From positions 44,888,001 through 44,952,000 of the forward strand of contig OZ287756.1 of the NCBI GenBank assembly GCA_965649765.1: a stretch of DNA of 64,000 nt, written 5' to 3'. Origin of the DNA: Bispira polyomma. Lineage: Eukaryota. The notes beneath the pieces are model-generated. The model had not been told where the DNA came from. It searched no databases and saw only the letters and a list, made by a program, of their open reading frames with translations. A program made the translations under genes and the position numbers. Position 1 is the stretch's first letter. Each line of letters opens with the position of its first letter. This document shows positions 1,627 to 60,284 of the stretch, piece by piece.

Positions 1627-2703
1627 ACTGATAATAGCAATGAAAGCCTGAGTAAACCTAACCCACTCACTGGTAATAGCAATAAAAGCCTGAGTAAACT
1701 TAACCCACTCACTGGTAATATCAATAAAAGCCTGAGTAAACTTAATCCACTCACTGGTAATATCAATAAAAGCCTGAGTAAACCTAACCCACTCACTGGT
1801 AATAGCAATAAAAGCCTGAGCAAACTTAACCCACTCACTGGTAATAGCAATGAAAGCCTGAGTAAACTTAACCCACTCACTGGTAATATCAATAAAAGCC
1901 TGAGTAAACTTAACCCACTCACTGTAATAGCAATGAAAGCCTGAGTAAACCTAACCCACTCACTGGTAATAGCAATAAAAGCCTGAGTAAACTTAATCCA
2001 CTCACTGGTAATATCAATAAAAGCCTGGGTAAACTTAACCCACTCACTGGTAATATCAATAAAAGCCTGAGTAAACCTAACCCACTCACTGGTAATAGCA
2101 ATAAAAGCCTGAGCAAACTTAACCCACTCACTGGTAATAGCAATGAAAGCCTGAGTAAACTTAACCCACTCACTGGTAATATCAATAAAAGCCTGAGTAA
2201 ACTTAACCCACTCACTGGTAATAGCAATGAAAGCCTGAGTAAACTTAACCCACTCACTGGTAATATCAATAAAAGCCTGAGTAAACCTAACCCACTCACT
2301 GGTAATAGCAATGAAAGCCTGAGTAAACCTAACCCACTCACTGGTAATAGCAATGGAAGCCTGAGTAAAGTTAACCCACTCACTGGTAATATCAATAAAA
2401 GCCTGAGTAAACTTAACCCACTCACTGGTAATATCAATAAAAGCCTGAGTAAACTTAACCCACTCACTGGTAATATCAATAAAAGCCTGAGTAAACTTAA
2501 CCCACTCACTGGTAATAGCAATGGAAGCCTGAGTAAACTTAACCCACTCACTGGTAATATCAATAAAAGCCTGAGCAAACTTAACCCACTCACTGGTAAT
2601 AGCAATAAAAGCCTGAGTAAACTTAACCCACTCACTGGTAATAGCAATGGAAGCCTGAGTAAACTTAACTCACTCACTGGTAATAGCAATGGAAGCCTGA
2701 GTA
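1627..2703. repeat. 42-bp minisatellite, about 25-26 units, built from the exon end plus splice donor of the DEG/ENaC gene
   Basis: Unit ~ACTGGTAATAGCAATGAAAGCCTGAGTAAACTTAACCCACTC with a few variant positions and a 1-nt deletion near 1924. The last unit overlaps the coding exon at 2678-2703. Confidence 0.97.
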
Positions 2704-2873
2704 CTGACAGTCCAGTATGGTGTCATTAGGCTGGTGTCCCACTTGGAACTGTATCAGACTGTCCAGTTGGGCCAAGATCTCTGCCATCTTCTCCTCCTTC
2801 ATAAATGAGGCTCTGGGGTAGTTCCTGTCAAACAAACTTCCTGGGATGGGCTGACCCTCCAGGCTGGTGTTAA
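2678..2873 (-). CDS. DEG/ENaC family channel, internal exon (NTSLEGQ...VGHQPNDTILDCQYSGFHCYYQ)
   Basis: ttacag acceptor and GTGAGT donor. 196 nt, phase 1 to phase 2. Carries the GHQ-x2-D-x-ILDC-x2-SG-x2-C motif seen in DEG/ENaC channels. Confidence 0.88.
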
Positions 2874-3304
2874 CTGTAACCATACAACAAACACAAATGT
2901 ATAATATTATTGAAAGCTTCCATTTTAAGTGATCATCTAAACTACTATGTATGTGACTGTATCTGGTCGCTCCAGACTGGTATGGAACTCCGGCATGGTA
3001 TTCAATTGCAATTTGATTGGCTGGAAATATATTGTTCTATATAATCTGCTTGGCTGACACGAAGGAAAGTCTAATATAAGAATGTTTGTTAATATTGAAA
3101 CCAGATAATCTGTGTTTCCAAGTGAGTCTAGTATCCACTTGGTCACAGTTAATTCGTAATGAAATGCAGCTGTCAAAAACAGGCATTTATTTTGGCACAA
3201 ATTTCCAAATACAATTGTACAATGCATAGGATGAATAGCACTAATTATGACAGATGGTAAATTTAAAGCCTTTATAACTTTGTTATCTTCATTTTGAAAT
3301 ACTA

Positions 3305-38254: not shown

Positions 38255-38435
38255 CTTAATATATACATTCTCCTTTCACTTGTTTCCACTCATCCATCAA
38301 TATCTGTAAATCTGACAGTATTATTTGAATTTCATTTTCACAATTATCCAAGACAGTTTTTTGGGTATTTTGTCCATATGTATGATAGCATCCATTATGT
38401 ATAATGATACAACAGAACATAATTTTAATCAACAT
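38255..38435 (-). pseudogene. Orphan exon 1 of a type-A short collagen (donor destroyed, collagen exon absent)
   Basis: [55 protein letters not shown]. No GT donor. Intron homology continues to ~37840 and then ends. Confidence 0.85.
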
Positions 38436-39091
38436 TTTTTATTGATATTGCTTGGACAAATACACTGTGCTATTGTGGTTCCTGTGCTCAAGTAGTGATT
38501 GTCAAATCTTCCTTGTCATATATTTACCTGTTAAAATTATTTTTTGTATTTTTTTTCTTTTGACAAATTTATTTAGTTATTATGGTTCTTATGCTGAAGT
38601 GAAGCTTGTCAAAACTTCCTTGCCATATATTTACCTGGTGAAATTATTCTTTGTGAATGTTCTTTTATTTCTTAAAATACTTGATAATAAATCTCCAGTT
38701 GTTGCACACAGGTGGGAAGAATCCCCTCGGAAGACAAAAATGTTTAAGAAGGAATGAAGTTGTTTTGTCTATAAGACCATTGAAAATTGTTTATGTATTA
38801 TGATTACTTAATGTAATGGTAATAATACCCATGAAAATAATTTGACAGACACAATTCTATACCATTATGTACGTTTACCAGGGGATTGATTAATCTTTTC
38901 AAAGCCTCTAATGTTTGTTAAAGTAGTATATATCTATACATACATATTTATGTATATATATATATATATCTTTACAGCCATACATATCAGTTTACTTATT
39001 TGATAATTGTTTGATATTTTTGCTAACATTGGCACATATTTAAAAATAGTCAAAAGAGGAGTTACTTAGCAACTCTCAATCAAGCGTTATG

Positions 39092-40440
39092 TCATGGGCA
39101 TCTTCTTTCATGGCAATCAGGTCTTGTAGGTGGACAGTTATAACATCCAAAAATATCATCTTGTCCAGGTGGTCCAGGGGGGCCTTGTATGCCATTGAAT
39201 CCGTTCAATCCTTTGGGTCCCTGTGTACCTCTGTATCCTTTATACCCACTTGGTCCAGGAGAGCCACCATATCCAGTATAACCCTTTAATCCTGGTGGCC
39301 CTGTATTGCCTCTGTCACCTTTGTCCCCAGGAGGTCCTGTGGTTCCAGGTTGCCCTTTATTTCCAGTTGTTCCTGTATCACCAGGTGGTCCTGCTTCTCC
39401 TAGCTTCCCTTGAACTCCTGTGTCTCCAGTGTCCCCTTGTTCCCCTGGATCACCCTTTTTTCCCTTCTCTCCTTTTTCTCCTGTGGATCCACGTTGTCCT
39501 TCAAGTCCCCCCGGTCCTGTACTCCCACTTGCACCTGTATTACCCATTGCACCTGTGGAGCCAACATCACCTTTATCGCCAGGACTACCAGGTAAGCCAT
39601 GTGGACCTCTTACACCTGAAGATCCAGTGTAACCTGTACCACCTGTATATCCTGTAGCACCAGTGTCACCAGCAGGAGCTGTGTCACCTATAGAACCAGT
39701 TTTACCAGGTGGTCCGGTGTAACCTGTATCACCTGGCTTACCAGGTTCACCTCTTTGTCCAGGGTAACCAGGTGGACCTCTGACACCTGTAGCTCTAACT
39801 AGGCTTCCGTCTAAAAATAAACATTGGACAACTGATATTTATGTTATAAATTTGGAAACAATAAGTAGATGATTACCCATTTATCAGTGGTTTATTTGGT
39901 ATAATGTAAAATATGAGGCCAAATACCCACTAAGTATATAGTAGCTTCATCTGCATGGACAAGTTTGAAAATTCAGTAATATGCTAACAACCAAAAATGA
40001 CTTATTTTCCTAGGCAGGGGTAATAGAAGTATGTTGTTACATGTAATCTAATAACTTTGTTGCTTTTGCTAGTATAAATTATTTGTCAATAGAAACTATA
40101 GCACTAAATACGCCTCTAATAGAAATACCTGAAGAGCTATCAATGTAATTATATTCTCACATGATAATAATAATAATGATCTGGAAAATACGCTTTACAA
40201 TTATCCCTTATGTACAATGTGTTGGCTTTATAGGTAAAAACCAAGAAAACAATTGTACCACTTACCATATACTTTCCCCTTCACTTGCTTCCACTCATCC
40301 ATCAATATCTGTAAATCTGACAGCATTATCTGTATTTCATCTTCACAATTATCCAAGACAGTTTTCTGGGTATTTTGTCCATATGTATGATAGCATACAT
40401 TAAGTATAATGATACACAAGAAAATAATTTTAATTAACAT
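39092..40440 (-). CDS. Short secreted collagen, type A copy 1 (exons 40266-40440 and 39092-39810; 297 aa)
   Basis: ATG, signal-like N-terminus, G|GTAAGT donor and tttttag acceptor (phase 1). 70 Gly-X-Y triplets (one Gly>Ala). Tail [21 protein letters not shown]. Frame checked open. Confidence 0.9.
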
Positions 40441-43400
40441 TTTTTATTGGTATTGCTTAGACAAATGTATTATGTTATTATGGTTCCAATGCTCAAGTAA
40501 TCATTGTCAAAACTTCCTTGTCATATATTTACCTGTTGAAATTATTCCGTGTAAATGTTCTTTTATTTCTTAAAATACTTGATAATATCACTCCAGTTCT
40601 TGCAAACATGTCCAAAGACATAAATGTTTAGGAAGCAATGAATTGTTTAGTCTATTTAAAAAAAAATTATTGTTAATAATTAATCTATTGGTAATAATAC
40701 CCATGAAATAACTTGATTCAAAATAAATTCACCAGAAAACAGACACAATAAGATACCACTATGTATGTTTAGTAGGGGATTGATTAATCTTTTCAGAGTC
40801 TCTAGTGTTTGTTAGAGTAGTATACAAATATAATGAAAATGGAAATCTAAAACTGTTTGACATTAATATTATTCTATGTTTTGATGAAACATAGCCTTTT
40901 AAGGGTCTCTGTTGAAAACAGTCTAATTAATCTGGTATAATTAAAAATTATTTCATGTCTGGACTACTGGGCCCGTATTCACGAAAGGACTTTGCCAGGT
41001 CTTAGGCTTAAATCAGTATACTTTTGTGCTAGATTTAAGCCTAAGACCTGGCTAAATCCTTTTGTGAATACGGGCCCAGTACTCTTTATTTTCTTCCATA
41101 TTTCACTTATGTGAATCCCACTTTTAAATTAAACTTGTCCTTTTGTATTATATTGTATTGTAAATTTTTAACGCGCCTTATTGATGCTAGGCATCTCCTA
41201 AGGCGCAACATCAGAATCAGTCAGCCAATAGAAAAATCGAAAAACATAGCCAGGTCCTGCAATATGTAAGTCGTGCAATATTTAATATTAACCTGCCTAT
41301 ATGTATATGTAAGTGTGAGTGGGATTTTCTAGGATTTTATGGACCATGATCTTTGCCTTCCATTCTGAGTGTGTCTCACATCTCCTCCCCAAACCCTCAC
41401 ACTCTCAAGTTTTTTTGGGAGAGGTGAGAATATACTTATTTTGACAATTATACATTAACTTTGTGCTAGTTGACCCACCTTGTTTCCTAAGAGAGTGATG
41501 TTTTCAATGTGTGAATAAAATGCTAAAGTTTAGGGTAGATTAAACATGTCCTACAATATCTTAGTTACCTGTGTATAAAGAGGTTCCCCTAACACCCTCC
41601 CCTTTTTGAGAGAGAGTGCTTTCTTCAACTTGTGTGGTAGGCATTTTCAGAGGGGTTCAGTGACATTTGTAACTGACATTTTTAAAGGGCTAGAGCACCC
41701 TAAAGATTTACTACTGTTATGGTTATCAAGGACATGTAATGCTTGTCAAAACTTTCTTGTCATTTATTTGCCTGGTTTTAGTTGTTGCATAGAAAAAACA
41801 TTAAAAATAAATGAATATAAAGTTCAAAAAAGTTGCAATAGTTTTAACAATTTTCCTTTATGTGTATCAATATTTATGTTTGTGTATACTAATTAGTATG
41901 TTTGGTTTTAGGTAATGACATAGCCTTAAATATTAACAGCACGTAAATTAATTAAACTTAAGTCTAACAAGAGTTAAATCTAGGACGTTGTTGACATATT
42001 GCACCAAGTCAAAAATTTACTTCACTATTATTATATATAAGGTCATTGAAAATTGTTTATGCACTGTAATGAAATAATATCAGGGTAATAAGACCCATAA
42101 AAGTAATTTGATTCAAAATAAATGCTTAATCTTTTCATTAGAGTCACTGGAGTTTGTACAAGTAATATACAAACATAATAATAATTAAAATCTGAAACTG
42201 TAACATTTATACTTTTCAGAGTGATAAAATTAAAATACAACTTAAGTGAATAAATGTACCTTATTCTGTAATAATTTGCAAGTGGTAACATTCCAAGCAT
42301 GATAAACATTTGTAGATTAAAATAAAAGACATTTTGACGTGAATTTTACTTTAATTAAAACGGAATACAGATCTACCTTGTGAGAATTAAGAAAAACCTG
42401 ATGAGAAGTAAGTTATGCAATGAATAAAACTAAATGAAAAAAAATAACCATAAGCCAGTGTTTGTACTATGCCTTTTTTACTTGGTTTTAATGTTTTCTA
42501 AATTTGCTTCCTTTTTCACTGGGTAAACGTTTATGTCTAACTAATCATGTTTAATTTTTTCTGTTTTCATCCACTATTTTGAGGATATTACTGCATCTCC
42601 AGTAAGGTAAACTAGTCCATTCCAACTGAAAGAGTCATAGTTGCAAGTTTTGTAAATTGCCTGATTGACAAGACATATAAGGTGCTTATGCTCCAAAATT
42701 GTCTATTTATGGGAGAAAGTTATCACCATGGTGGATGATTGGTAAGCTTGTACAGGAAGCTTTTCAATTGACTTTTACAATTGTGCCCTAACAATTTGTA
42801 AAGGTTGACGATACTCAACTGGAGTGGTGAGGGTAAAACCGTCTTGACCACATCTGGTGAAGACTGACGGCATATTGACATGTATTAAGTTACTAGTCCT
42901 GATGAGAGAAGACAAGGGGGTTGTTCAAGTCTAATGGTTCTAAACACCATACTTCAAAAATCTCGGCTGCTCTATTGGTAAGTAAAGTATATTTAGGTAT
43001 GATAATAGTGCTGAATAGTGGACAGTCGGTACTAATTGACTTGGTACAGTGAAACTGATGTGAGGTCGTGGTTGGTATGGGGAGGGACAAATGTTTCATG
43101 GTGGGTGTGACAAATAGTTATATCACACAGACCAGGGGGTTGCCTTTTTAAGTGTTCTTCAGGAGCCAAAAATGACACCATCATTGCGCATGCATACATT
43201 GCATGAGTAGTGGTTGGTAAAACAAACGATGAACCCATTCAGAGGTCCTATTATTTAGAGGTTGTGGAGGGCACTCTTTTTATCAAGTATGTGCCAATTT
43301 CAGATAAAGAAATTGTAATTGTAGTAGCCTTTACCTTGTGCAGAACCCTTTTCTGATAGTTACAAATAAGGTTTATATTTAAAAATGTGAGGTTTTCTTT

Positions 43401-44330
43401 TTTTCGCTGTCTTACGTCTTGCGACATCCCCCATGCAACTTTTTTGGCTCCTGTGTTTCTCATCACTAGCATTTTTACAGCATAGTCAGTTGGGGCCTAA
43501 TGGCCACCATACACTACATATGGTGACATGTGACTCAGTTAACACAGTTGCACAAAACTATGTATTTAGTATGAATACTACATGTGGCAATACCCAACTC
43601 AGTACTCGCAATATATTTGTTGAAAAGTGCTGAAGTGGTTTCGTGGTTTTTATCTAATCAACGGGTATCAGGTGAACTTGTTTATAGGTAGAAAAAGATA
43701 GTAAGAATTAACGACATAATAATCGACTTAACTATTGACTAAAGAGCTTGGCAGGTAAACACAATGTCATTCAATTACCAATACTGATAAACTCTGGTTC
43801 TTGGGATAAAGTTTCCGTACCCAGTCCATGTACGTTCCTTTGAAATATAAGTATCTACAATATGAGTCACCAACTCCAAAGGTGTGAATTTGAATGAGAA
43901 GGCAGAGGAACACCAAGTCATTAAAATGGCACTCTTTGGGTTTTTATTAGTTCTAATACATCTACATAACTAAAATTAGTATTCTACTACTATTTTATGT
44001 ACAAGGTTTTGATATAATAATAAGTAACATCACAGTTAAGCTAATCACTAATGCACTTAACTGTGCTCAATAACAACATTTACAATAGTTACAATCATAT
44101 TATTCTCACATTAGTCAAGTTTGTATCATGCACTTAACTATCAAATTCACATACTAAAAGCAAGTTTATAAATAACACAGCTGCATGGATTAGTTAATGT
44201 AAGTAAGAACATGCTGCATTAATTATTTCATTGAAGTACATGCAATGTATACGCATTAATAATAAAAGATAATTATAAGACATATAAATGACAAATTACT
44301 GATATAAAAACGTATACATGTAAAGAAAGA
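39170..44330 (+). repeat. Segmental duplication, copy 1 (paired with ~59010-64000)
   Basis: Collinear, near-identical coding, intronic and intergenic sequence at an offset of about 19.7-20.0 kb. Confidence 0.95.
40965..41081. mobile_element. Palindromic MITE (~117 bp hairpin)
   Basis: tactgggcccgtattcacgaaaggactttgccaggtcttaggcttaaatc ... gatttaagcctaagacctggctaaatccttttgtgaatacgggcccagta. Confidence 0.85.
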
Positions 44331-45626
44331 TTGCCCCACTATAAGGTTAAAAGATTAAAAGAAATATTTTGAGTAATATATTGCACATTATGATATAGCT
44401 GTTTGTTTTAGTAATTTTCATCAGGACGACCTTCAGAAGTTTTTGCCTTGTGCAGCCCTGAATTCCAGAGTTCGGTAATTCGATGTTTATGTCTTGCTGT
44501 GTTTTCCTTAAGGTCAAGGCAACCCCCTTTACGAACAATCACAGCTCATTAAAGAACATATAATTGCGAGTTCAAAGCATCATGGCATGACATATATATT
44601 TTACTGGGTATTTATGTGAGGACAAAGCGTTGCTTCCATTGCATCTCACTGTCAGTTGGCATTTTCCCAGTGCCTTTGCTGTTGTAGTCATGCCACTTTG
44701 CTGGATTTCACAGTACCACTGGTATGAGTTTACCTCGCAAAATACAAAAGACAGTATGCGTTTGGTAATTGTCACAAACATAACATTCAATATACATAGG
44801 TATATAGTTAAGGTAACATATAGGTATACAAATACAGGGACTGGGGGGGGGGGGGGAATTTTAGCAGCACTTTGAGAGGCAGATAAATTTTGATGCCTTT
44901 TCTCTCAAAACCAGGGGTTTTTATAGGCAGAAGCCCAAGTTAGCAGGTGTATAATAGCTGAAAAGAAAACATTAGTCATTAGCCTGGCAAAACCTAAAGG
45001 GAGAAAAAGGGGTAAACAATCCATTAGTGTCACTTCTAGGACTGACATCTAGTGCGGCACCTCGCTCTAGTTTTAGTATGTGGTCATAATATGATTTTTC
45101 TGTGTACTCAAAACTCAATTGAACAAAGGGATATTTTGTAATAATCACTATTGCAATGTGCTAACAGTCCCACACAAACGTGTACAGTAAAATAACATCT
45201 ATGACACTAGTAGAATAATTAAGGTCTGCTGGCTGAAGGCTTTGAAAGGTAATCCATTGGAAGTGGAATTCTTTGAAAAATATGGTTCGATTTGCGGTTA
45301 GGTGTAGAATGATTAGATGTGTGATATATAGCTGATGAAATAAAGCAACAATATAATTTTTAGCATGTATTTGTGTAACAGTGCACAAAGTACAATATAT
45401 CTAGCAATAGCTCAAGTGGTTTATGTAGCATATATGTAGCATAACAGCAAAGCTCAAGTGTTTAAGTTATTGATAAAAACAATAACAATATTGTTATAAG
45501 TCAACACACTTTATGTTACTGGAGAATGTATACAGACATACGATGCCTGCACGACAGATATTGTATTTTATGTACTTTAATATATAAAATCATATTACAT
45601 TTTTGGTATGATGTATTCAGTTACTT

Positions 45627-47978
45627 TTACTGGTTGTGACACCCTATCGCTATTGTGTCTGCTCGACAACCTTTTGGTCCTGTAGGCCCTGTACTACCAG
45701 TTGCACCTTGTGGTCCTTTTGCCCCTGTTGAACCTGTATCCCCTTTAACTCCCCTACTTCCTTTGTAACCACTGTACCCTCGGGGTCCTCTAGGCCCTGA
45801 AGTACCAGGTGAACCTTTCTGTCCCTTTTGACCCTGATAGCCGATGTCACCTTGCATACCATCTGGACCTTGTATTCCAGGTAATCCTTGGTTTCCAGTG
45901 TTACCAATATATCCAGTAGAACCAAGCTGTCCCTTGAAGCCTTTATCGCCTAGTAGCCCATTGCCACCTTTTGCTCCCTTATCTCCTGATTGGCCCAGTG
46001 AGCCCTTTGTCCCAGCTGGATCTGTTAAGCCTCTTTGGCCAGTACCACCTTGCTGTCCTACAATTCCTGTTGAACCTCTAATCCCATTACTTCCTTCAGA
46101 GCCCGATATTCCAGCATTTCCACTTCTTCCGCTTGTTCCAGTCTGTCCAGACAACCCAATTACTCCATCATCACCTTTTTGACCAACTGATCCTGTACTT
46201 CCAATGTATCCCATATCGCCAATAAATCCTGTATTTCCTTTTACTCCAGTAAATCCTGGCAGACCAACAGACCCTCTTGGTCCAGGTTCTCCAGTCTGGC
46301 TTCTATCTAATAAAATAACATATTTAATGTTAATGTTAAAAATCAGCCAAAATTGTCCTCACTGTAATTTTAAGCTAATTGTTGTGAACTGCCAATATAG
46401 ATGTGATTTAGTAATGTAGATTTATAAAATATAACTGGCACATATTTCTGATTTTATAAGTCTGCAAAAATGATTAATCAGTTTTACAAAATGAGTTAAA
46501 GGAAAAACAGGTACACAATTGGTAAATAGTAAAGGTTAACATGAAGTAGATTTCAAAATATATCAAGCAAATATACACATGGAAAAATAATAAATATAGC
46601 ACCAAATTGGACTAGACCTAGCGCACCGGAGAACCTTTGCATATTTGTATCCACCAGAAAGGCAAAGCACCCTTTGTAGCAAGCACCCTAGCTAACACCC
46701 AGCCTAGAAGCCTATGATTTCCTACGGGGCATTTATGCTAAAACCTTAAATAGCACAAGTGGGTTTCACATTGGAAATTTTTGGTAGCAGGTTGTATGAG
46801 GGATCCAAGGTGATATTGGCCCACATCAAAAGATTCCCAGGCCATGATTTCCTATAGGTTGGTTTCACATCCAAAACATGTTTGACAAGAAATTAGAGGG
46901 ATATAGGCACTTTTAGGTTTAGCCATCCCCTTTTGACCTTGAAGGAGAGGCCTAAGGGCAAATCTGAGCACATAAAAAGATTCCCTGGTCATGATTTCCT
47001 AAAGGTTGGTTTATATACCAAACCTCTAGGACCAATGATAAGTGAGATATAGGCACTTTTAAGTTCGGCTATCCGCATTTGACCTTGAACAAGAGGTCTA
47101 AGGTCAAATCTGAGCGTGTCATGGTTTTGCCACTCGAATCTGTGGGACCAATAATAAGTGAGATATAATCAGTTTTAAGTTTGGTCATCTGCATTTAACC
47201 TTAAACGCGGGGCCTAAGGTCAAATCAAACCACAACACAAGATTTCCTGATCATGATTTCCTTTTGGTTGTTTCGGATCCCCAACCTGTTTGACCAATAT
47301 TCAGCAAGATATAAGCACTTTGGGAAAGTTTGGCCAAAATTGGTAACTTTGGGTACTTTAGCACCCTGAGGATGACATTGAATGAGGAGATTAAAGGTCA
47401 AATGTCTGCATGCTTATAAAGGACATATATATCCGTTAAAAATATCACCCGTAAAGAGATTCATCCTTCTACAGCTAAGAAACAGACACAGTTAAAATCC
47501 TAATTATTTTCAAAGAAACGCCCATGACGGCCATGTTGTTTTTCAAAATGAGGCAAAAAATTACTCCTAGACAAGCTTTTGTAATAAAAACATTTCCTGT
47601 AAATTTCAGGTGCCTAGGTTTTCCCAGGAGAGTGGTAACGGTAAAATCTCTACACACACTGATGCGGTGGCAGCGGCGGTGTAATGATACCTAATCCATA
47701 GTATCAACTGTAGTTTTCCAGTAGATACAATAATTCTTCTGTATACCGATTATTGTATCACTCCTATCACTGCTCACATACAACAAAATAACCATTTACT
47801 AAATGAAATTAGAATAAATACCTAAAATGTCATGTTTTATTTGTGTCCAAACACTCTTCATCATCTGTATATCCGATTTCAGCATCTGTACCACATCTCT
47901 GCAACTGAGAATATGAGGTTTTGTTGTGTATTGTCCAAATGTAGATGAAATACAAAGAAAAACTAAGAAAAACAACAT
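45627..47978 (-). CDS. Short secreted collagen, type B (exons 47822-47978 and 45627-46306; 278 aa)
   Basis: Exon 1 MLFFLVFLCISSTFGQYTTKPHILSCRDVVQMLKSDIQMMKSVWTQIKHDIL, G|GTATTT donor, ttattag acceptor, phase 1. 70 Gly-X-Y triplets (one Gly>Asp). Tail CRADTIAIGCHNQ*. Confidence 0.87.
46610..47712 (+). mobile_element. Helitron/Helentron-like non-autonomous element with internal ~130-bp tandem subrepeats, in the type B intron
   Basis: About 4 diverged units sharing aaggtcaaatc..aagattccc..catgatttcct..ggttggttt..gatatag..tttgaccttgaa. 3' hairpin gtatcaactg...cagtagatac. Confidence 0.5.
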
Positions 47979-48192
47979 CTTTGGCCTATCGTTATATCAA
48001 ATATTTAAAAGTTGTCATGTCCTTACTTACAGGGATTTGAATTCATAGTTAATGTATTCAGTCGACAAGAGTGTCAGTTATATAATATATTCGCAACTTT
48101 CCCAGGTCATAATATGTGTACTAATTGAATAAAGAGGAAGACAATTTCTATATCGTGGGCCTTAGTTTAGAGAATATGAGGAGACATCAAAC

Positions 48193-49340
48193 ATGTTAAA
48201 TATGCTCGCCTTTCATATTATAACAGTTTTAACATTATCATTTGTATTAGTTGCTGGTCAAGCAACTTTTCAGTTTGGATTATTCATGTGTAAAAGCCAA
48301 ATACAGTCCTTGGTTAATGGCATGGATACATTGAAAAGGGAATGGGCACAGGCAAAGAAAACAGTATCTGGTATAGTTTCAAATATACATAGTATGAATA
48401 TATACAATAAGTTTTAGTATAATGTCAATAAGGATAATAAAGTTGAATTATATCACCCTACTTTTTGGCATACTTAGCCCTTTTCTATAGTTTTTCAAAA
48501 AGAACAACAATTTTCTTGTTTAGCAAATATTCTGGTGACCTCAATATTTAATTGTGGGTCAATGGAACAAACTTTTACAGTTAGTAAAATGTTCAAAACA
48601 TCATATATTATTAGATATATAAGACATATTCTATTTTCAGAAGACAACTTAACTGGGGAGCCTGGACCAGTTGGCTTTGCTGGTCAACTAGGTGCAACAG
48701 GAGATACTGTAAATGTTGGACAACCCGGTGAAAGAGGCAAGCTTGGGACACAGGGTATACCGGGGAAAAGGCCCAGATGGGGTTGATGGTATTAAAGGCC
48801 TCTCAGGTCTGATTGATGATACCAGATTAGCTGGAATCAAAGGGTTTACTGGACAACAAGGTCCCAAAGAAATTAATGGTGATACTGGAGCAACAGGTGC
48901 ACATGGGATACAAGGTTCCAAGGGACCGTTAGGATCCAAGGGTAAACCAGGTCTTAAAGGTTTCAAAGGGGCGAGTGGGGAATCAGAATCACCAGGAGAT
49001 GAAGGTTAACAGGGGTTAGAAGGTATACGTGGAAATAAAGGCATTAAAGGTACAGAGGGAGAAAAAGGTGTAATTGGTCCAATTGGAGAAAATGGTGCCA
49101 GAGGATATTATGGTCCATCAGGTGATAAAGGTCCAGAAGGTGTTCCTGGACCACCAGGCTCTAGGGGTAACCGAGGGAACAATGGGGCTTCAGCCAAGGG
49201 CAATTCTGGTGATACTGGATACACAGGTCCAAGTGGTGAACGTGGAAGTACAGGACACACGGGCAAGCCTGGTCCGGCTGGTAGATATATATACTGAACA
49301 ATGGATTTCTGCAAAAAAACGACAGTTCTTATGCTACAGT
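48193..49340 (+). pseudogene. Short collagen, type E, pseudogene (exons 48193-48370 and 48641-~49340), head-to-head with type B
   Basis: Intact exon 1 (MLNMLAFHIITVLTLSFVLVAGQATFQFGLFMCKSQIQSLVNGMDTLKREWAQAKKTVS) and phase-1 intron. Frameshift near 48770, TAA at 49007-49009, several Gly substitutions, TGA at 49295. Confidence 0.85.
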
Positions 49341-52300
49341 TGTCACTTATATGTATTAACTTCAAACAGGACATTTTGAGATAAATTTAGATTTGTGAGA
49401 AAATCCAGGGGTAGAACATCTAATAATTAAAGACAGTTTCATATTTATTAACTTTGATTCTTGGATCTTCAAATAAGTGGCCATGTTTAAAATACCCATT
49501 ATATATTAATTTGGTAAAGTGTCAATTCATGTGTAACACTAATATCCAATTTTAAACATGTTAATTACCTTAGCATATGACATGTTTGCTACAAGAAACA
49601 ATTGAACTTAAACTGACAATAAATTTAGGATTGATTTGTGTCTTAATTGCATAATTAGTCTCGAATATTTAGAATAATGAATACAAATATAGAAGTAATT
49701 TATTGAAATAATGATTTTAGTATTTCTTGAAGTCAATCGAATATTCAAAATATAATAAATAGTTTCACGAACATACTTTTTTAAAAATCAAACCCTGCCA
49801 TTGAAATAAATTTGTATTGACATTGTATATTGATGTAGCATAATATCTATATAGCTCGCGTTTAAGGTTGATTATACTTGCATTTAAGGACAAATTATTT
49901 GAAGTTAAAACAGTTAAAGTAATGCCGCGTGAATTTTTGTTTTTAAGTTTTACAATTTTTTTAATATTTAACAGTTAACGTTGGTAGTATGGTTCACAGC
50001 ATGTATATTTAAAGCGTGGCCAAGTCACTCAAAAAGGTTTGAGAAACAGAAAATTGGAAGTTTTTAAGGGTTAATTTGACACTCATATATTCTGTAATTA
50101 TAAGCGTGTACCCTGATTATTGATATTAACTTTGCCACAGAGAATTGTGATGTTTAGTAATATGTAAATGCATCATCTACAGAATATGGGCCAGTTTGTG
50201 TATTTAATATTTTTATGAAGTTATTATTGTCTTGAAGTTAAGTCACATGCTGCTTCTTTAAATATGAAAAAAACAAAAGTAACTGTTATGATATATATGT
50301 TTGGTTTTAGTATGACTGCTCGTTGAGAGTGTTTCCGGTTAAATAAACATGCTTCGTTTGTAGTTTCACTTGTATGTTGTGATACAAACATTACAGTTAC
50401 CCTTAAGAGGAAAGTTTTTTAATGTATAAGATCATTGAATTGTGAATGCAGTGATGTTATTTCGATATTTTCTAGTCGTAACAATATCCATGTAAATAAC
50501 TTGATTCAAAATAAATTCACCACAAAAATACACATTTGGATATCATTAGGTGTGTTTACCAGTGGATGTGTTGTCAATAATGTCAATTAAAAAATGCCCG
50601 TCAAAACTTCCTTGTTATTTAACTAAGGTTATGTATGTTTACTGGGGAATTAATTAATCTTTCAGAGTCTAATATTTATGTAAATGGAGTATACAAAAAT
50701 AATATAAATGGAATTCTTTATTTTTTTGGTAATGATTCCACTTTCCCAGAGTGATATTTCATCCTTAAACAAGCAAATTAAGCTCTTAAATATACTTACG
50801 TCTGCATTGGTTTGCATAAGGAACATTTATGGGCCTCATAAACCTTTGTTGGCGGCTATAATTGTGATTTGATCCTTCTTTGAGGTAAAATAAAGCCTTA
50901 GTATTTGTGTATGTTTAAGACAGCTTAATTAAAATGGCGTAATCAATGTTACTGCTCATACATCTCTACGATCTTTTGTTCCCCCAAAGTAATTGGAATC
51001 AGTGACAATTAAAAAATCTAATCAAATTTATAATAAGTATTTGTACCAATACAGTTGATCACACTCTAGTCCCCTTAACCAAAAGATATATCCAGGCCAA
51101 ATATAAAGATTCATCGATGCCAAATATATATTTAATCAAGCTGGAAACCCTAACTGAGAACATATGACAAGTATCATTGGTAAGGGCAGTGGGGTCAACT
51201 CTCGAAGTTTGTCATGTACTTTGTTGTAGGTTGTTGCTTTACAGTACAAATATTCAGTGTACATTGATTTTGGTTGGTTGTACCTTTGGTAGCACCTATA
51301 TCACCTAAAGTCAGAGTAGATAAGATTGCTGATTTCAACCACCAATAAATCCTGCTACCAAATATATTGCAATAATAAATTAAAATATATATCACCAAAA
51401 TATTGAATCTTATATTTAATATAGTTAATACAATGATAATAATAAATATTATTCATTAGATATAGCACATTTTGAACATCACTGTTATCAAATGCACTTT
51501 GACATTATTACCCCAACCTGAGTTCTACCACTTGTCAACCAATTGTTCAGTCTCAGCTCCCTCAGGAAGCATAGTAGCCGTGCTGCCACATATGGCACAA
51601 GGCTGAAGACACCCATTAGAACCGTGGCTCTGAGATCACTCAGATGAAAAGCCCGACAGTCTAACGGCTCATTATAAGAGAGTACTAAAGCTTGTTGAAT
51701 TAAATTTTTCATTTTCATTCCTCTTTTTGCATTTTACAACCCTGAGAGTAATTTAACTGAAATGCTTAAATGTGTTTAAAGAGTGAAAGATTTGTTGGAA
51801 CTAAAATTGGAAAACTGCAATTATTTTATTAAATGGGTGTTGGTATTAAAGTGTCTATCATTATAACAATTCAGTAAACAATTATCTTGCGATAAGTTAA
51901 AGATTCAGTAAAGCAAGGAAAGATATATATTCATTGGGGTGTACAACGCCATGTTTTGATGTTACCCAAAAGCTGTGAGATTTTGGCATCTCATATGCTA
52001 TGTTTTTGAAAAGCCTTTTTAATGCAAATGCAAAGTCTACAAAGTTTTGTGTGGATATAACATACACATTTAAAGTATTTTCTGTGTATATTTATGTACA
52101 TCAATTTTCATTGAATTATTTTGTCCGATTATTAAATTATTTTCTAGTCGGCTTTTAAACATTTAGTTTAAAAAGCATCAATGCAATTTTTCTTCACAGA
52201 ATATGATATGGGTTGAATAACCATAGAAAGATGTGTTTGCAAATTTTATTCTATTTTTATTTTTATAATAAAGCAAACAAGGGATTTAGAGAAACATCTA

Positions 52301-52679
52301 TGTTACAACATATTTATACACAGGAGACACCATGAAGTTACCATGAAAGATTCCTACTGTTTCCTAACCCAAACCATTGTATTTAATCTTCACATCCCTT
52401 TAAATGGTTCAGTACCACATATATTGCTAACTGGCAAGTAGAGGTCCACCACAAAGATAAGCTTTTGCCACTAAAAATTTGTTTATTTGCGTTTAATGTA
52501 ATGCTGTTTAGGTTAACGAGTGCACCCACCTTTTTAAAAAGGTTAATAGAAAGAGTTTGATCAGGGTTGCAATATGAAAAAAGTGATACTTTGAAAACTA
52601 AATGACATATTCAAAACAATATTTCAATAGACTAAGAGGGGCCAACCTAAAGCTGTCCCTAGAGTAATCTTTTCCTATA

Positions 52680-53500
52680 TAGATTAGAGGTTATAGGTAA
52701 TGTTGCGTATTGATCAGTTAGGAGTTGGACAATTCAAACCATGATCAAACAAATTAGAAGCTTCTTAGGATTTTGTTCCTATTACCGTAATTTCATCAGA
52801 AACTTTTCAACAATACTAATTAGACAGACATACACACCTATGACAAAATTTTAATGGACATCAAAATGTAAAAAAGTTTTCAGTAAACTTAAGTCTTGTT
52901 AAGTAAGTGTACCAATTTTTACATATCCTGATATATCGAACCATTTATCTCAGACACTGACACAAGTAGTGTTGTCATAGCAGCAGTACTATCACAAAAA
53001 TCTAATGTTCGTTGTACAGAATTGGTACTTACAATTATACAATCATTCATTGTTCTGTCAAACTTCATGGTAATGACGATGCATTATCAAAAAGGGCATA
53101 ATTTAAAGCACGGAATGGTAGTAAGTAACCCAACAAATGATGGAACATCATTTGAATCACGAATTCAGTGTTACACATCAGATGATTGAAAAAGCCAGTC
53201 ACAAAACAAAGACTTGTCATTGATTTTTGGAAGAATAAAGGTGTCAAGCCATCCTGGCATGATATTTTAAGATATTCTACCACCTTTAAAAGTTACTGGT
53301 CACAATGGTACAGGTAGACTTGCTTACAAGTCTTTACTGTTGCTAAAGCACTGTATGACGGCATTTTAAACAGTTCCTATTCATTCAAAAGGGGGCAGCA
53401 CCAGTGTTTTTATAACTGCCAGCCTCTTTATTTTATCCAAAATGTCAATCCACACAGGGATATAGAGTAAAAGTCATAATGCCCTTATTGAAGGACCTTG
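52680..53500 (+). mobile_element. Gypsy/Ty3 LTR retrotransposon pol remnant
   Basis: KQIRSFLGFCSYYRNFIRNFS, F*WT..C...F..LK...PIFTYPD..PFISDTDTS..IAAVLSQ and HGNDDALS motifs of the RT-RNase H region. Confidence 0.85.
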
Positions 53501-53603
53501 CACAAGGGCTATGGGACAGGTAGACTTGCTTACACACACACATTAAAAACGCTTTAGTTTTTTAGCCAATCTTGTCTAACCTAGGATATAATAAGGTCTG
53601 GCT

Positions 53604-53815
53604 ACCTTGAACTCCTATGTCTCTAGTGTCCCCTTGTTCGCCTAGATCACCTTTATTTCCCTTCCCTCCGTTTCCTGTGGATCCACGTTTACCTTCAAGT
53701 CCTCCTGGTCCTATATTCCCACTTGCATCTGTAGTACCCGTTGCACCTGTGGAGTCAACATCACCATTATCACTAGGACTATCAGTTAAGCTAAGTGGAC
53801 ATCTCACACCTGAAG
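53604..53815 (-). pseudogene. Internal fragment of a type-A collagen exon
   Basis: Degenerate Gly-X-Y (STGATGTT..GNIGPGGLEGKRGSTG..KGNKGDLGEQGDT) homologous to 39410-39620. No flanking splice sites. Confidence 0.85.
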
Positions 53816-54285
53816 GTCAGGTAAAATGTTCAAATAATGAACAGAGCTGGTAGAAAGTGCTGTATACAGATGTCACTTTGGGTACATGATACCATCATCT
53901 GAATGACATAACGACCATTTGATACAATTATTTGACAAAACACTAAAATTATACGTAAATTATCAACTTTGACTAACATGTTACTCAAAATAAACCTAAA
54001 TGGTCACTATACAACAACAAACACTACAGCTGTGATGTAAGTGAACACTATCCTAAATATAGGAAAAATATTTATTTTCTCCATTTGAACCGAATTCCAG
54101 AATATATGAGATCATGTTTTTACTTGTTGATTTAAACGATTGGGCTTTGATACATATTTAAAATCTCTTTCTTATCATATATATATATCCCTTTTATAAT
54201 TGAACAATTATTTGATATTCTTATAATCTTATGACATAGTTACAAATAGTCAAAAAAGAGTTACTAGACAACTATCAATCGAGCT

Positions 54286-56133
54286 TTAGCTTAAAGTACA
54301 TCTAACGTTTACAGGGCAATGTTCCCTAGATGCTCAGATGTAGCAGTTTTTTCCAGGTGGTCCAGATGGACCTCTTTCACCCTTGAATCCTTTCAATCCT
54401 TCAGGTCCCTCTATACGTCTGTATCCTTTATAGCCACTTGGTCCAGGAGAGCCAGTATATCCAGTATAACCCTTTAATCCTGGTGACCCTGTATTGCCTC
54501 TGTCACCTTTGTCCCCAGGAGGTCCTGTGTTGCCCTTTATTACCAGTTGTTCCTATATCACAAGGTGGTCCTGCTACTCCTAGCTTCCCTTGAACTCCTA
54601 TGTCTCCAGTGTCTCCTTGTTCCTCTGAATCACCTTTATTTCCCTTCTCTCCCTTTTCCTCCTGTGGATCCACGTTGACCTTCAAGTCCCTCTGGTCCTG
54701 TATTTCCACTTGCACCAGTATTACCTGTTGCACCTGTGGAGCCAATATCACCTTTATCACCAGGACTACCAGTTAAGCCAAGTGGACCTCTTACACCTGA
54801 AGATCCAGTGTACCCTGTACCACCTGTATGTCCTGTAGCACCAGTGTCACCAGCAGCAGCTGTGTCACCTTTAGAACCAGTTTTACCAGGGGGTCCGGTG
54901 TAACCTGTAACACCTGGCTTACCAGGTTCACCTCTTTGTCCAGGGTAACCAGGTGGACCTCTGTCACCTGTAGCTCTATGTAGGCTTCCATCTAAAAATA
55001 AACATCATTTCAGTGAAAAACTATTTCATTTCAGTGAAACATTTTTTAAAATTTGTTCCAGATATTTCCAAAACATTGTTTAAATTGATCCATATCACCC
55101 CTTGAATTATAGAGGTCACAGAGCAGTTGAAATTTACTCTTAATAATTAGCAAATATTCAGAAAAAAAGGATTATTTTGTTTGTTTGCTTTTTCTTGTTT
55201 ATAAACCATTTTCCAACTAAGAGTAAATAGTTTATTAAAAGTAATTAATCATCTCGAGTAAAACCATACCTAACAAAACTCACATACTCTAACTCTGAAC
55301 TTCAAATCCAGGTTGTTTGAGATCCACAATTCAAAATTGATTTGATTGTTTACCAGAAATAAACAAAAATAAACATTTGACACATGATTTTCATGGTATA
55401 GATATGGATAAATTATTTAATGCTAAAAGAGCACATAAATGTTATGCATGGGATACAAAATCGGAAGGGTCTGTGTTTTAATTAGCTACACAAATCACAC
55501 CTCTCCAAGTCGACCAACCTATAGCTTTTCAAAAAAAAAACATTATCAAAATACTCATTCCCAGTAGTTTCCAGGGTATAATATGTCGTAAAATACCCAG
55601 TAAAGTACACGATAAAATATTGAGTAATTACTTAGCTTCATCTGCGTGGCCAAGTTTGCAAATTCAGGAGTTTACTAACAAACTGACATAATAACGGAAA
55701 GGATTTAAATGATACACTCAATGGCATAGGTACAGAGAATATATTGCTACACACAGTTCTGATTACTTGTCAGTTGAAACTATATCACTACATACGCTCT
55801 TATAAAAATAAAGATTCATTTTCTTATTTTATAGAAATATCGGTATTTACAAGATTAAACTGGAAGAGACAAAAACGGATCATACAAATTTAGGTTATGA
55901 AAACATAAAATACGCTTTACAATTATCTCATCTGTACAATGTGTTGGCTTTAAAGGTAAAACCCAACTAAACATTTGTACCACTTATCATATACTTTCCC
56001 CTTTACTTGCATTCATTCGGCCATCAATATCTGTAAATCTGACAGCATAATTTGTATTTCACCTCATTTTGTCCATATATATGATTGCATACATTGAGTA
56101 TAGTGAGACGTAAGAAAAATGTTTAATCAACAT
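54286..56133 (-). pseudogene. Type-A-like short collagen pseudogene (copy C)
   Basis: Exon 1 (55988-56133) has a deletion and a GT>AT donor. Exon 2 (54286-54991) has a +1 frameshift near 54650, an 8-nt deletion near 54530 and a TGA in the Cys tail (KNCYI*ASREHCPVNVRCTLS). Confidence 0.88.
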
Positions 56134-58935
56134 TGTTCATCAGTTTTCTTGCATCAATGAATTATGTTATTATGGTTCACATGCTTAAGTAACATGCTTG
56201 TGAAAACTTCCTTGACATTAATTTACCTGGTGAAATTATCCTTTATGAATGTTCTTTTATTTCATACAATACTTGATAATACTATATACCTTTCTGGTTG
56301 CTGCATACACGTGAAAACAAACCTTAAAAAGAAATACAAATTAAGTCGAATAAAGTTTCAATTGATTTAATAAGTTTTACTTCTGGTATAACATTTTTTT
56401 ACGTGTAGTATAAGGTACAGCCTTAACTATTAACAGTGCTTAACTTACTTAAACGAGAGTTAAATCTAGGAAGTTGTTGACATGTTGATCAGAAACATAA
56501 ATTTGGTTTGCTATTTTTATCTATAAGAACATTTGAAAATTGTTTGTGCAGTGTAATTAATTAATCTCTTAATGTAATAATAACCACTAATATAATTTGA
56601 TTCAAAATAAATTAACCAGAAAACATGCACATTACACAATTATTTTGCTGAGAAATAATTATTGTTCACCGAGTCTCTAGTTTTTATGTAAACAAAGTAT
56701 ACAAACACAATATAAATGGAAATCTGAAACTGTTTGTCATGGTTTGTGATATTTCATCCTTAGACAAGCAAATTAAATAAATAACTATACTCGATCCTGT
56801 AATAATTTGTACAATGTAATATCCTGGGCATTGATAAACATTTGCAGAATACATTGAAAAGAGATTTAAAAGAAAAACATAATTCAGTTTAGTGGAATCG
56901 TTCATAATTCATGAAAACAATCAATTGCTATTCAATATCAGCACCAACACAGTCCACCACAATGTATAAACACAAATAATGCATTAAAGGGGTTGTGTTT
57001 AATCTACAGAATATTAAGCCTTATCTATTTTAGCTTAAGTTTTTCAATTATTTATAAAAAAGATTGTGTTAACTTTACACACTTTCATTTTACTGGGGAA
57101 TGTCTACAGGTTGGCGTCATATGCCCACAGTCTAATTGCTAAGATGTGAAGTTAAAGATAAGTTTCCGGGAATGCTATAAGTAGCTTTTGTGTGAAGTTA
57201 TATAAATCAGTAAAACCATGTTTGAGGATTTTATTTTGGTACATATTAGTAGAAGTATATATACAGGCACAGATAAAAGGGGGTATAATAATATAAAAAA
57301 TTTAAAACTTGCTAAAGTTGTGACACCCATATGGTACAAATTTAATAACAACAAATACTAAAATTAATAAAATACTTTAAGGGACTAACCCTGAATTATG
57401 AAATGAACATAATGTATCATCATAGGGTGTGTTACATATTAACAGACTATCGTGCCTAAGCCAATCTTTCCCCTGATATTCTAACAAGCTTGTTTCCAGT
57501 ACAGTACTGCTCATAAACTTGACATAAACATGCAAGTAGGAATAACATGATTGCCACTGTACTAGGAAATAAATAGGTCATAATTGACCAATAATTTTGT
57601 TTCACGACCAACGTTTTTTATCACAATCAACATTTTATTTTTCATGACCAACATTTTCTTTTTATTGTTTATATATATAATAGTTAATACACACAAAGCT
57701 AGCTTCTGAAGTTGCCGACAGCCTAAGGGTGCCCAGCTTCCCCTAGAATCTGTCTCTATTACACTACATCCTGTAGGTCGGAATCACAAAGGAGATATGT
57801 GGGATACCTGACATCTAATTTCATAGTTTAATTACTTATACCATAACTACTGTTGCTTCTCTTGTTAACCACATGAGAAGACAAGTTCCCCGTGAGAACC
57901 TTGTTTAAATTGGACAACCTTTTTTGACCAACTGATCAAGTACTTCCAGAGAATCCCTGATTGTCATTTAATAATGTAGATTAATAAAATATAAGTTGGT
58001 CGTATTTCAGATTTTATAATTCTGCACAAATGATAAATCAGTTTTCTAAATGAGTAAAAGGACAATCAGGTACAAACCTGATACCAAAATGGTAGATGTT
58101 AGCATGAAGTAGATTTTAAAATATATCATGCGAATATACACATTAAAACTTATTAGCTTACAATCACACTGAAGGTGTTCTAACCTGTTCTGAAAGTGAA
58201 CACTTTATATATTTATATATATTTCATATATTTTTTGAAAAACGAAAATGGTCGATGTGATGCCAAATCTCTAAAAATATATTGTTTTGAAATTTAAGGC
58301 ACCTTGATATATGTACCTGTGTATTTATAAACTATACCTGTGATTGATGGTTATTCCTAAAGTGGTGCTTTCCCTGTTGTGTGATGTAAACTCAGACTGT
58401 GTGACAACTAGTTAAATAAGAAATGATAAACAAATATTACCTTTTACAACATGTTAAGTGTAACTCTTTAAAACATACAGAAAACAATAAATATTTTAAA
58501 CCGTACTGTATGGGTTGACGACAACGGATATAACTACAAAATGTGGTAATTGTGGGAAAAAATGAAATACATAATTATATCACAAAGCAACTTAAAGGTT
58601 TTGACTGGAATGTCCCTCACAAAGCAATATATCAAAGTCTATAAACAAGAAACCCTCCAGTCGTTATGTAAATTGGCATTGGCTGCAATATAGGAAACAG
58701 TCCATAAATACTACAGATAATTTAGTTGAGATATTTATTTTCTCAATATAAACAGAATTCAAGAATACATGAGTTTATAATTTTACTCGTTAATTTGAAC
58801 AGATATAGACACATATTTAAAATATGTTTTTTTTTTCTTGCTATATATGTCACTTCTGAATATTTGACAATTCTCCGCTATACCAATAACTTTATCACAT
58901 AGTTACAAAAAGAGGAAACAACTGACAATCAAGTT

Positions 58936-60284
58936 TTATTTTAATGGACAACCTCTATCGCAATGTATTCCATCAGGACAGTCAAAGCAGCGATGAAATA
59001 CATCTTCCCCAGGTGGTCCAGATGGGCCTTTTACACCATTGAATCCGTTCAATCCTTTGGTTCCCTGTGTACCTCTGTATCCTCTATACCCACTTGGTCC
59101 AGGAGAGCCAGTATATCCAGTATAACCCTTTAATCCTGGTGGCCCTGTATTACCTTTGTCACCTTTGTCCCCAGGAGGTCCTGTGTCACCAGGTTGCCCT
59201 TTATTTCCAGTTGTTCCTATTTCACCAGGTGGTCCTTCTGCTCCTAGCTTCCCTTGAACTCCTATGTCTCCAGTGTCTCCTTGTTTCCCAGGATCCCCTT
59301 TATTTCCCTTCTCTCCTTTTTCTCTTGTGGATCCACGTTGACCTTCAAATCCCCCTGGTCCTGTACTCCCACTAGCACCTGTATTACCCGTTGCACCCGT
59401 GGAGCCAATATCACCTTTATCACCAGGACTACCAGTTAAGCCAAGTGGACCTCTTACACCTGAAGATCCAGTGTAACCTGTACCACCTGTATGTCCTGTA
59501 GTTCCAGTGTCACCAGCAGGACCTGTGTCACCTTTAGAACCAGTTTTACCAGGGGGTCCGGTGTAACCTGTATCACCTGGCTTACCAGGTTCACCTCGTT
59601 GTCCAGGGTAACCAGGTGGGCCTCTGTCTCCTATAGCTCCAACTAGGCTTCCATCTAAAAATAAACATTGGAAATCTGATATTTATATTATAGATTTGGA
59701 AACAATAAGTAGATGATTACCCATTTATCAGTGGTTTCTTTGGTATAACGTAAAATATGAGGCCAAATACCCACTAAGTACACAATAGCTTCATCTGCAT
59801 GGACAAGTTTGAAAATTCAGTAATATGCTAACAACCAAAAATAACTTATTTTCCTAGGCAGGGGTAATAGAAGTATGTTGCTACATGTAATCTAATAACT
59901 TTGTTGCTTTTGCTAGTATTAATAATTTGTCAATAGAAACTATAGCACTAAATACACCTCTAATAGAAATACCTGAAGAGCTATCTATGTAATTATATTC
60001 TCATATGATATTAATAATAATGATCTGGAAAATATGCTTTAGAATTATCCCTTATGTACAATGTGTTGGCTCTATAGGTAAAACCCAAGAAAACAATTGT
60101 ACCACTTACCATATACTTTCTCCTTCACTTGCTTCCACTCATCCATCAATATCTGTAAATGTGACAGCATTATTTGTATTTCATCTTCACAATTATCCAA
60201 GACAGTTTTCTGGGTATTTTGTCCATATGTATGATAACATACATTAAGTATAATTATACACAAGAAAATAATTTTAGTTAACAT
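58936..60284 (-). CDS. Short secreted collagen, type A copy 2 (D) (exons 60110-60284 and 58936-59654; 297 aa)
   Basis: Same exon lengths (175 + 719 nt) and splice sites as copy 1. About 71 triplets with one Gly>Arg. Tail VFHRCFDCPDGIHCDRGCPLK*. Confidence 0.88.

Follow-up and report, generated by a model that had tools for sequence, protein, structure and literature searches.

A fan-worm gene cluster for three short, length-matched collagen chains that may assemble into a coiled-coil-registered rod

Introduction

Two described systems come nearest to the genes reported here: the sawfly silk collagens in concept and the secreted nematode cuticle collagens in architecture. The genes lie in a 64,000-nucleotide stretch of the genome of the fan worm Bispira polyomma (GenBank assembly GCA_965649765.1, contig OZ287756.1, positions 44,888,001 to 44,952,000, forward strand), hereafter the window, and encode three types of short collagen chain, A, B and E. 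The assembly holding it measures 1.035 Gb at 34% GC, in 14 large pieces. Positions are those of the window, or of the contig where prefixed C9 (the window being C9:44888001-44952000). The chains belong to the collagen superfamily, with 69-72 Gly-X-Y triplets behind a signal peptide (assigned by eye, as throughout) and a match to Pfam PF01391 at E 1e-33. That they form a real and conserved gene family we regard as virtually certain. The best overall explanation, with a probability of roughly 0.55, is that this birth-and-death cluster produces a coiled-coil-registered, probably mixed, disulfide-linked short-collagen rod.

The silk collagens of the sawfly Nematus oligospilus (SfC A-C) are likewise three small, lineage-specific, length-matched chains with little proline at Y; they have 60-62 triplets, giving a rod of 52-53 nm, 38-53% proline at X, glycine-rich ends and no inter-chain disulfides (PMC3790195). 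A, B and E, in contrast, have 69-72 triplets (a predicted rod of similar size, about 60 nm), 11-17% proline at X, a threonine-rich Y position, a predicted N-terminal coiled coil with Cys and Trp, Cys tails in A and B, and 2-9 cysteines per mature chain. No sequence link between the two was found, and the resemblance is convergent. Nematode cuticle collagens such as DPY-17 share with A/B/E a length of about 280-300 residues, a signal peptide, an N-terminal coiled coil, cysteines beside the helix, tyrosines available for cross-links and membership of a multigene family (PMC11304992). In A/B/E the coiled coil before the helix is indicated by a heptad pattern and a predicted helix. The nematode chains, however, are divided into two or three Gly-X-Y blocks, the longest of 37-43 repeats (PMC11304992), whereas A/B/E have a single block of about 70, with a break of at most 1-2 residues. 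None of 13 exon-1 peptides matched Col_cuticle_N, even with E values up to 10 admitted, and the RxxR furin site that nematode cuticle collagens carry near the N-terminus is absent from all 12 A/B/E chains that we modelled. Cnidarian minicollagens are also short secreted collagens polymerised through terminal cysteines, but they have 12-16 triplets, polyproline and CX3CX3CX3CX3CC domains (PMC4863159); A/B/E lack these, and the spacing of their tail cysteines differs and varies. The likeness to nematode cuticle collagens and minicollagens drawn in a first-pass annotation of the window is thus functional only, the defining features of both being missing.

Among other collagens with an N-terminal coiled coil and N-to-C folding, the MACIT collagens XIII, XXIII and XXV are anchored as type II membrane proteins, have several interrupted domains and carry a furin site (PMC11304992), the last again without counterpart in A/B/E. 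The annelid cuticle collagen of Riftia pachyptila resembles A/B/E in that threonine outnumbers proline at Y, but its helix is very long and has globular ends (via PMC11766948), as against about 210 residues and about 60 nm here. Fibrillar and type IV collagens are multi-exon, exceed 1000 residues and end in COLFI or NC1; the present genes have two coding exons, encode 271-306 residues and carry neither of these ends. At the level of gene arrangement, C1q A, B and C are clustered genes for three chains with N-terminal cysteines, as in A/B/E, and COL4A1/COL4A2 lie head to head on a short shared promoter, as B and E appear to do. No gC1q, C-type lectin or fibrinogen domain like those of C1q, collectins and ficolins is found in A/B/E, however, and the coiled-coil neck of C1q and collectins is C-terminal whereas the predicted one here is N-terminal. 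Since the coiled coil, threonine at Y, cysteine ends and head-to-head genes are each known elsewhere, A/B/E represent a new family and a new combination, not a new principle.

A cluster of two-exon collagen genes

A six-frame scan confined the Gly-X-Y runs of the window to 39158-59640. The collagen features are as follows.

38261-38435, minus strand: A0, an orphan A-type exon 1 without GT after its last codon and without its own exon 2; 91% identical to A1 exon 1
39092-39810, minus strand: A1 exon 2, with linker, 70 Gly-X-Y triplets (one Gly->Ala), 4-Cys tail and stop; Pfam Collagen E 2e-33
40266-40440, minus strand: A1 exon 1, with signal peptide, Gln, Cys-to-Trp heptad helix and phase-1 donor GTAAGT
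45627-46306, minus strand: B1 exon 2, with 70 triplets (one Gly->Asp), 2-Cys tail and stop; Pfam Collagen E 1e-33
47822-47978, minus strand: B1 exon 1, with signal peptide, heptad helix and phase-1 donor
47979-48192, no strand: B1/E1 head-to-head interval, 214 bp between start codons; a candidate shared bidirectional promoter, by inferred function
48193-48370, plus strand: E1 exon 1 (pseudogene copy), with signal peptide, heptad helix and phase-1 donor
48641-49297, plus strand: E1 exon 2, broken, with 60 triplets, a 2-residue break, 10 triplets and stop, without Cys tail (compared with intact E3)
53605-53818, minus strand: A-type exon 2 fragment, 86% identical to A1 and A2
54286-54991, minus strand: A pseudogene exon 2, with a 1-nt insertion, an 8-nt deletion and TGA in the tail
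55988-56133, minus strand: A pseudogene exon 1, with deletions and its donor lost
58936-59654, minus strand: A2 exon 2, with 71 triplets (one Gly->Arg) and a 4-Cys tail; tail DNA 58% identical to that of A1
60110-60284, minus strand: A2 exon 1, with signal peptide, heptad helix and donor GTAAGT

The first-pass annotation had placed A1, A2, the A pseudogene, B1 and E1 correctly, with phase-1 donors and acceptors at each (the donor lost in the pseudogene being listed above). Open two-exon models with canonical phase-1 introns were obtained for A1 (297 aa), A2 (297 aa) and B1 (278 aa). E1, which had been thought readable once a frameshift was repaired, is a pseudogene: it has single-base deletions at about 48747 and about 48766, an in-frame TAA (49007-49009) and several lost glycines. 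The cluster extends 25 kb beyond the window, to C9:44976492, and the downstream members are a second broken E, B2, E2, B3 and E3. Of these, B2 carries a transposon in its intron, the E2 donor is mutated to GA, and E3 (C9:44975340-44976492) is the only fully intact E of the genome. A profile of exon 1 found ten sites genome-wide, all in the cluster, and nothing else of note. The working gene set is likely A1/A2, B1/B3 (perhaps also B2) and E3. In the two downstream B-E pairs the start codons lie 213 bp apart, nearly the distance seen in B1/E1.

Recent segmental duplications of 95-98% identity bear A and E copies (40440-43199 with 60392-63190, and 49002-53534 with C9:44953442-44957957). Repeated units of about 110 bp stand upstream of each A start codon. 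The 6-kb B2 intron is filled by a DIRS-like retroelement with long open reading frames (ORFs) and a tyrosine-recombinase gene, and the B1 intron holds a very high-copy repeat in 146-bp units (46600-47660). Some 12 kb beyond the end of the collagen genes, a 190-aa open frame (C9:44988942-44989511, plus strand) matches glycosyltransferase family 43 at E 2e-44; a link to glycosylation of the A/B/E chains is possible but unsupported.

The three chain types share one architecture

Twelve copies of types A, B and E were modelled from Bispira and a second species (next section); exons were joined for counting, for the ratio of nonsynonymous to synonymous substitution rates (dN/dS) and for the tree, and homology searches were run exon by exon. 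In each copy the hydrophobic stretch that starts at residue 2-4 runs up to a small residue ahead of an invariant Gln, and reads as a signal peptide. The earlier description of a cleavage site G|Q was right about the Gln, but the preceding residue may be Gly or Ser. The mature chain begins with this Gln and keeps the spacing Gln-x9-Cys-x17-Trp; the consensus interval from S/N to W, first given as 6-7, is 8 residues in every copy (Cys to Trp = 18). In all copies except for the E2 donor, GT marks a phase-1 donor nine codons after the Trp, and the AG of the acceptor precedes the first helix codon by 14 nt; the collagen helix starts at Trp+14 in 12/12. It runs for 69-72 triplets, or 209-216 residues, within mature chains of 252-286 residues. 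The window counts of 70-71 (A), 70 (B) and 60+2+10 (E) agree with those first reported. This constancy of length goes with strongly divergent X/Y residues, as had been noted: identity between types is 6-19%, near the background of 9-13% obtained from shifted registers.

The collagen exon had been described as uninterrupted, which holds for A and B1. In B2, B3 and the B of the second species one residue is inserted behind triplet 46, and E has its 2-residue break. Similarly, Cys tails are present in A and B but not in E, in which the Cys-rich stretch originally counted lies behind the stop. That stop falls two residues past the last triplet (E1 TGA 49295-49297; E2 and E3 likewise) and one residue past it in the second species. 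Mature A chains contain 5 or 9 cysteines, B chains 3 and intact E 2; the N-terminal part holds one in A, one in B and both of those in E. Cross-linking through terminal cysteines, as first suggested, therefore remains plausible for A (4-8 tail Cys) and B (2) and falls away for E.

Between the Cys and Trp+7, every copy has hydrophobic residues at Cys+0, 4, 7, 11, 14, 18, 21 and 25, a 4-3 heptad pattern of 3.5 repeats, and structure prediction returned one long helix for this region (pLDDT 78-89 there). The segments of A, B and E are interchangeable in length and core pattern. The Gly-X-Y region is poor in proline (6-12% overall; 8-12 of 70 X positions, 11-17%), and at Y threonine (14-21) exceeds proline (4-15) in 12/12 chains, Thr and Ser together taking 26-41% of Y positions. 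Tyrosine is nearly confined to X, often in a Gly-Tyr-Thr triplet.

The A tails of the second species have eight cysteines in 27-31 residues, arranged in paired CxxC and CxC motifs without family match. Such a tail might fold as a small disulfide knot or bind metal; a single-sequence model of it had low confidence (pLDDT 65).

The family is conserved in a second species

When the exon-1 profile was searched against 1.84 billion representative proteins, seven matches were returned, five of them short ORFs on one 1.48-Mb contig of ENA assembly ERZ22147071. The other two, a chemoreceptor-like repeat protein and a repeat ORF, matched over only 18-25 positions and were dismissed as chance. A wider profile added E exon 1 alone, on the same contig. 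The contig is of animal origin and rich in the transposon kinds found in the Bispira genome, and we infer that its source is a related worm. Within 160 kb it carries five A genes and two B/E pairs in the same head-to-head arrangement as in Bispira (174 bp between start codons); two A and one B are intact, and a third intact A lies on a second contig.

Orthologues of the two species are 52-55% identical and can be aligned in register with no indels; synonymous divergence (dS) is 0.9-1.5 and dN/dS 0.25-0.43. The chains are under purifying selection. Type-specific breaks are retained, in B after triplet 46 and in E after triplet 60. In a tree of the N-terminal segments, copies join those of their own type and not those of their own species (support: A 56, B 86, E 97), and the three types therefore predate the species split. 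A copies resemble one another more within each species (82% and about 70% at X/Y), the expected outcome of repeated duplication or conversion. The original proposal of a lineage-restricted, length-matched family registered by an N-terminal helix is thus borne out by the identical spacing, triplet numbers and breaks of the second species together with the clean a/d heptad.

Single-exon queries found no named relative among 5.8 billion proteins, the PDB and the ESM Atlas, and exon 1 gave no match in ESM Atlas, PDB sequence and Foldseek searches. The collagen exon, searched as single sequence and as an A-type profile, matched only generic collagen-like proteins, none with the exon-1 motif; their best in-register non-Gly matches numbered 31, versus 44-47 in true orthologues. 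No such family is described in the literature that we searched on annelid, sabellid and short collagens, where coverage of subscription papers was thin. The family is previously undescribed, and its three-type set is kept in at least two species and has so far been seen only there. In these searches the exon-1 peptides matched no described collagen family, and the triplet number is steady (69-72) across both species, both in keeping with the first-pass annotation.

Proposed assembly of the chains

We propose that the birth-and-death cluster encodes three ancient paralogous short collagen chains whose signal peptide would be removed at the invariant Gln. A coiled coil of 3.5 heptads, with Cys at its start and Trp near its end, would join three chains in the endoplasmic reticulum and set their register; about 70 triplets would then zip up into a triple helix in the N-to-C direction, the resulting rod measuring about 60 nm (213 residues x 0.286 nm). 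Nucleation of this kind is known for N-terminal coiled coils of other collagens (PMC11304992) and, judged from the heptads, very probably applies here. The chains most likely mix, A with B and/or E, given that B and E contain very little proline, end in step with A and lie head to head on what is probably one short promoter. Matched triplet numbers are expected of heterotrimer partners, and unequal numbers argue against heterotrimers in nematodes (PMC11304992). Such a low-proline helix may be stabilised by Thr and Ser at Y, probably glycosylated, and by Lys/Arg-Asp/Glu pairs; glycosylated threonine stabilises the Riftia cuticle collagen (PMC11766948). Disulfides between N-terminal cysteines would lock the trimer. 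An A-B-E trimer would have four of these and could therefore link all three chains. Finally, rods may be joined through the Cys-rich A tail and the two-Cys B tail into a secreted fibre or mesh, that of the tube, the cuticle or the crown skeleton. In sabellids the tube holds oriented fibres 0.1-0.3 um in width, and a cartilage-like matrix occurs in the crown (PMC7442040).

Axial Lys/Arg-Asp/Glu pairs were scored for all 27 chain orders in four chain sets. The top-scoring trimer contained both A and B in 4/4 sets, and EEE was the lowest homotrimer in 4/4, with almost no net favourable pairs (0-3). On balance some heterotrimer among A, B and E is probable, and a structural rather than an immune role is likely. 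A strict 1:1:1 A-B-E trimer is more doubtful. The full scheme, in which that trimer is obligate, 26-residue coiled coils select the chains, E bridges A and B through the four N-terminal cysteines, glycosylated threonine replaces hydroxyproline and A tails polymerise the rods into tube or crown-skeleton fibres, seems unlikely as a whole.

Several observations weigh against the proposed mixed rod. The charge-pair scores favour mixed trimers only weakly (best z 1.9-3.1 over 27 combinations), and the best order differs, being AAB in species 1 and AEB in species 2. Equal length is no proof of mixing, because the matched-length sawfly chains each fold alone (PMC3790195). There are more A genes than B/E pairs, and the A genes stand apart from the B/E promoter; a single internal Gly substitution occurs in each of A1, A2 and B1. 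ERZ22147071 yielded no fully intact E: a stop and the loss of three glycines disrupt one copy, and the other has a single-base frameshift that may be an assembly error. Public runs covering the locus are of DNA, no RNA run having been found; splicing is predicted from the sequence and co-expression presumed. The product could equally be tube fibre, crown skeleton or cuticle.

The sawfly precedent suggests another arrangement, in which three homotrimeric rods of equal length co-assemble side by side, by liquid-crystal or fibre packing as suggested for sawfly silk, their length being matched for packing and not for mixing. Each sawfly chain of 60-62 triplets does fold alone (PMC3790195), AAA and BBB score 12 and 11 net charge pairs against 16 for the mixed trimer in species 1, A and B/E differ in copy number, and each type has its own break. 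The near-absence of favourable pairs in EEE, a proline content in B of only 6-9% and three interchangeable coiled coils are hard to square with it, and we consider side-by-side homotrimers improbable, if worth keeping in view. Quite unlikely, in our judgement, is a soluble C1q- or collectin-like defence molecule, with clustered chains, N-terminal disulfides and bouquets, whose fast-changing A tail is a miniature binding head. Between A1 and A2 the tails, the most variable coding part, are 58% identical in DNA, compared with 92-97% for exon 1, intron and helix; tail cysteines number 4 in Bispira and 8 in the second species; and copies have repeatedly been duplicated and lost, which is typical of immune genes. 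Yet the tails are just 20-30 residues long and have no Pfam match, and no C1q, lectin or fibrinogen domain is present; moreover, the DNA just behind the A stop is as diverged (58%) as the tail, so the change may mark a gene-conversion boundary and not selection.

The gene models might also be incomplete, the end of exon 2 being spliced to globular-domain exons so that A, B and E would be ordinary members of a known collagen family. A GT-containing sequence lies near the E stop in both species, and the DNA-only coverage of the locus leaves room for this reading; contigs from three public runs that span B1/E1 contain paralogous variants and no spliced form, and run through the introns. The gene ends are nevertheless consistent: A finishes in Cys-Pro(-x-x)-stop in 5/5 intact copies of the two species, B in a two-Cys tail and stop in all copies, and E right after the helix. 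No splice donor at the gene ends is common to both species, and the 4-10 kb 3' of each gene, compared between them, gave only transposon-like matches and no conserved exon, in line with the first-pass annotation. Pfam recognised nothing beyond the PF01391 repeat on exon 2, with no match in tails or exon 1. From these sequences further exons are unlikely, and the known-family explanation very unlikely. Read-through or selenocysteine at the E TGA, behind which a Cys-rich stretch continues in frame, was rejected because Rfam found no SECIS and because, in the second species, the stop occupies the same position with no such stretch behind it. Least credible of all is a decaying cluster without present function: about half of the copies are broken in each species, but intact A, B and E remain in the Bispira genome, and dN/dS stays at 0.25-0.43 at near-saturated dS with the Gly register kept.

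How three different collagen chains are chosen and registered is still debated, and the natural examples are large and hard to make. With chains of fewer than 300 residues, little proline and a 26-residue candidate selector, all ten A/B/E compositions are testable in a standard expression system. If the full scheme with its obligate A-B-E trimer were true, it would define a collagen class of its own and offer the smallest model of three-chain selection found in nature. No molecular description of sabellid tube-fibre or crown-cartilage proteins appeared in the literature searched, and the family is a concrete candidate for such a protein.

Other features of the window and genome

Elsewhere in the window, a 42-bp minisatellite of 26 copies (1627-2703) adjoins an exon at 2677-3036 (minus strand) that resembles, by eye, a segment of a DEG/ENaC channel and has no Pfam match. 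Other dense clusters of long Gly-X-Y exons lie at C2:81060296-81086885, C13:10018967-10322092 and C6:77980568-78006678, none with the exon-1 motif. The C2 cluster has open frames up to 743 aa and could be the very long annelid cuticle collagen, which is poorly known at the gene level. The Hox genes of the genome include a Lox5 with a KLTG peptide, and Post2, which marks the animal as a lophotrochozoan; the mitochondrial features that follow read as those of a sabellid fan worm, probably Bispira. A mitochondrial contig (C75:3364-7704) has genes on both strands, with the small rRNA immediately ahead of cox1 but on the opposite strand, and cox2 and atp8 next in order; an AT-rich non-coding stretch of about 500 nt with an inverted repeat lies between cox2 and atp8 and fits the Sabellinae pattern. 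The small-rRNA/cox1/cox2/atp8 block is known from Sabella, Sabellastarte, Branchiomma and Bispira, and the ATP8 of this contig starts with MPQL, a beginning known from two Bispira species only (PMC13602327; PMC7889199).

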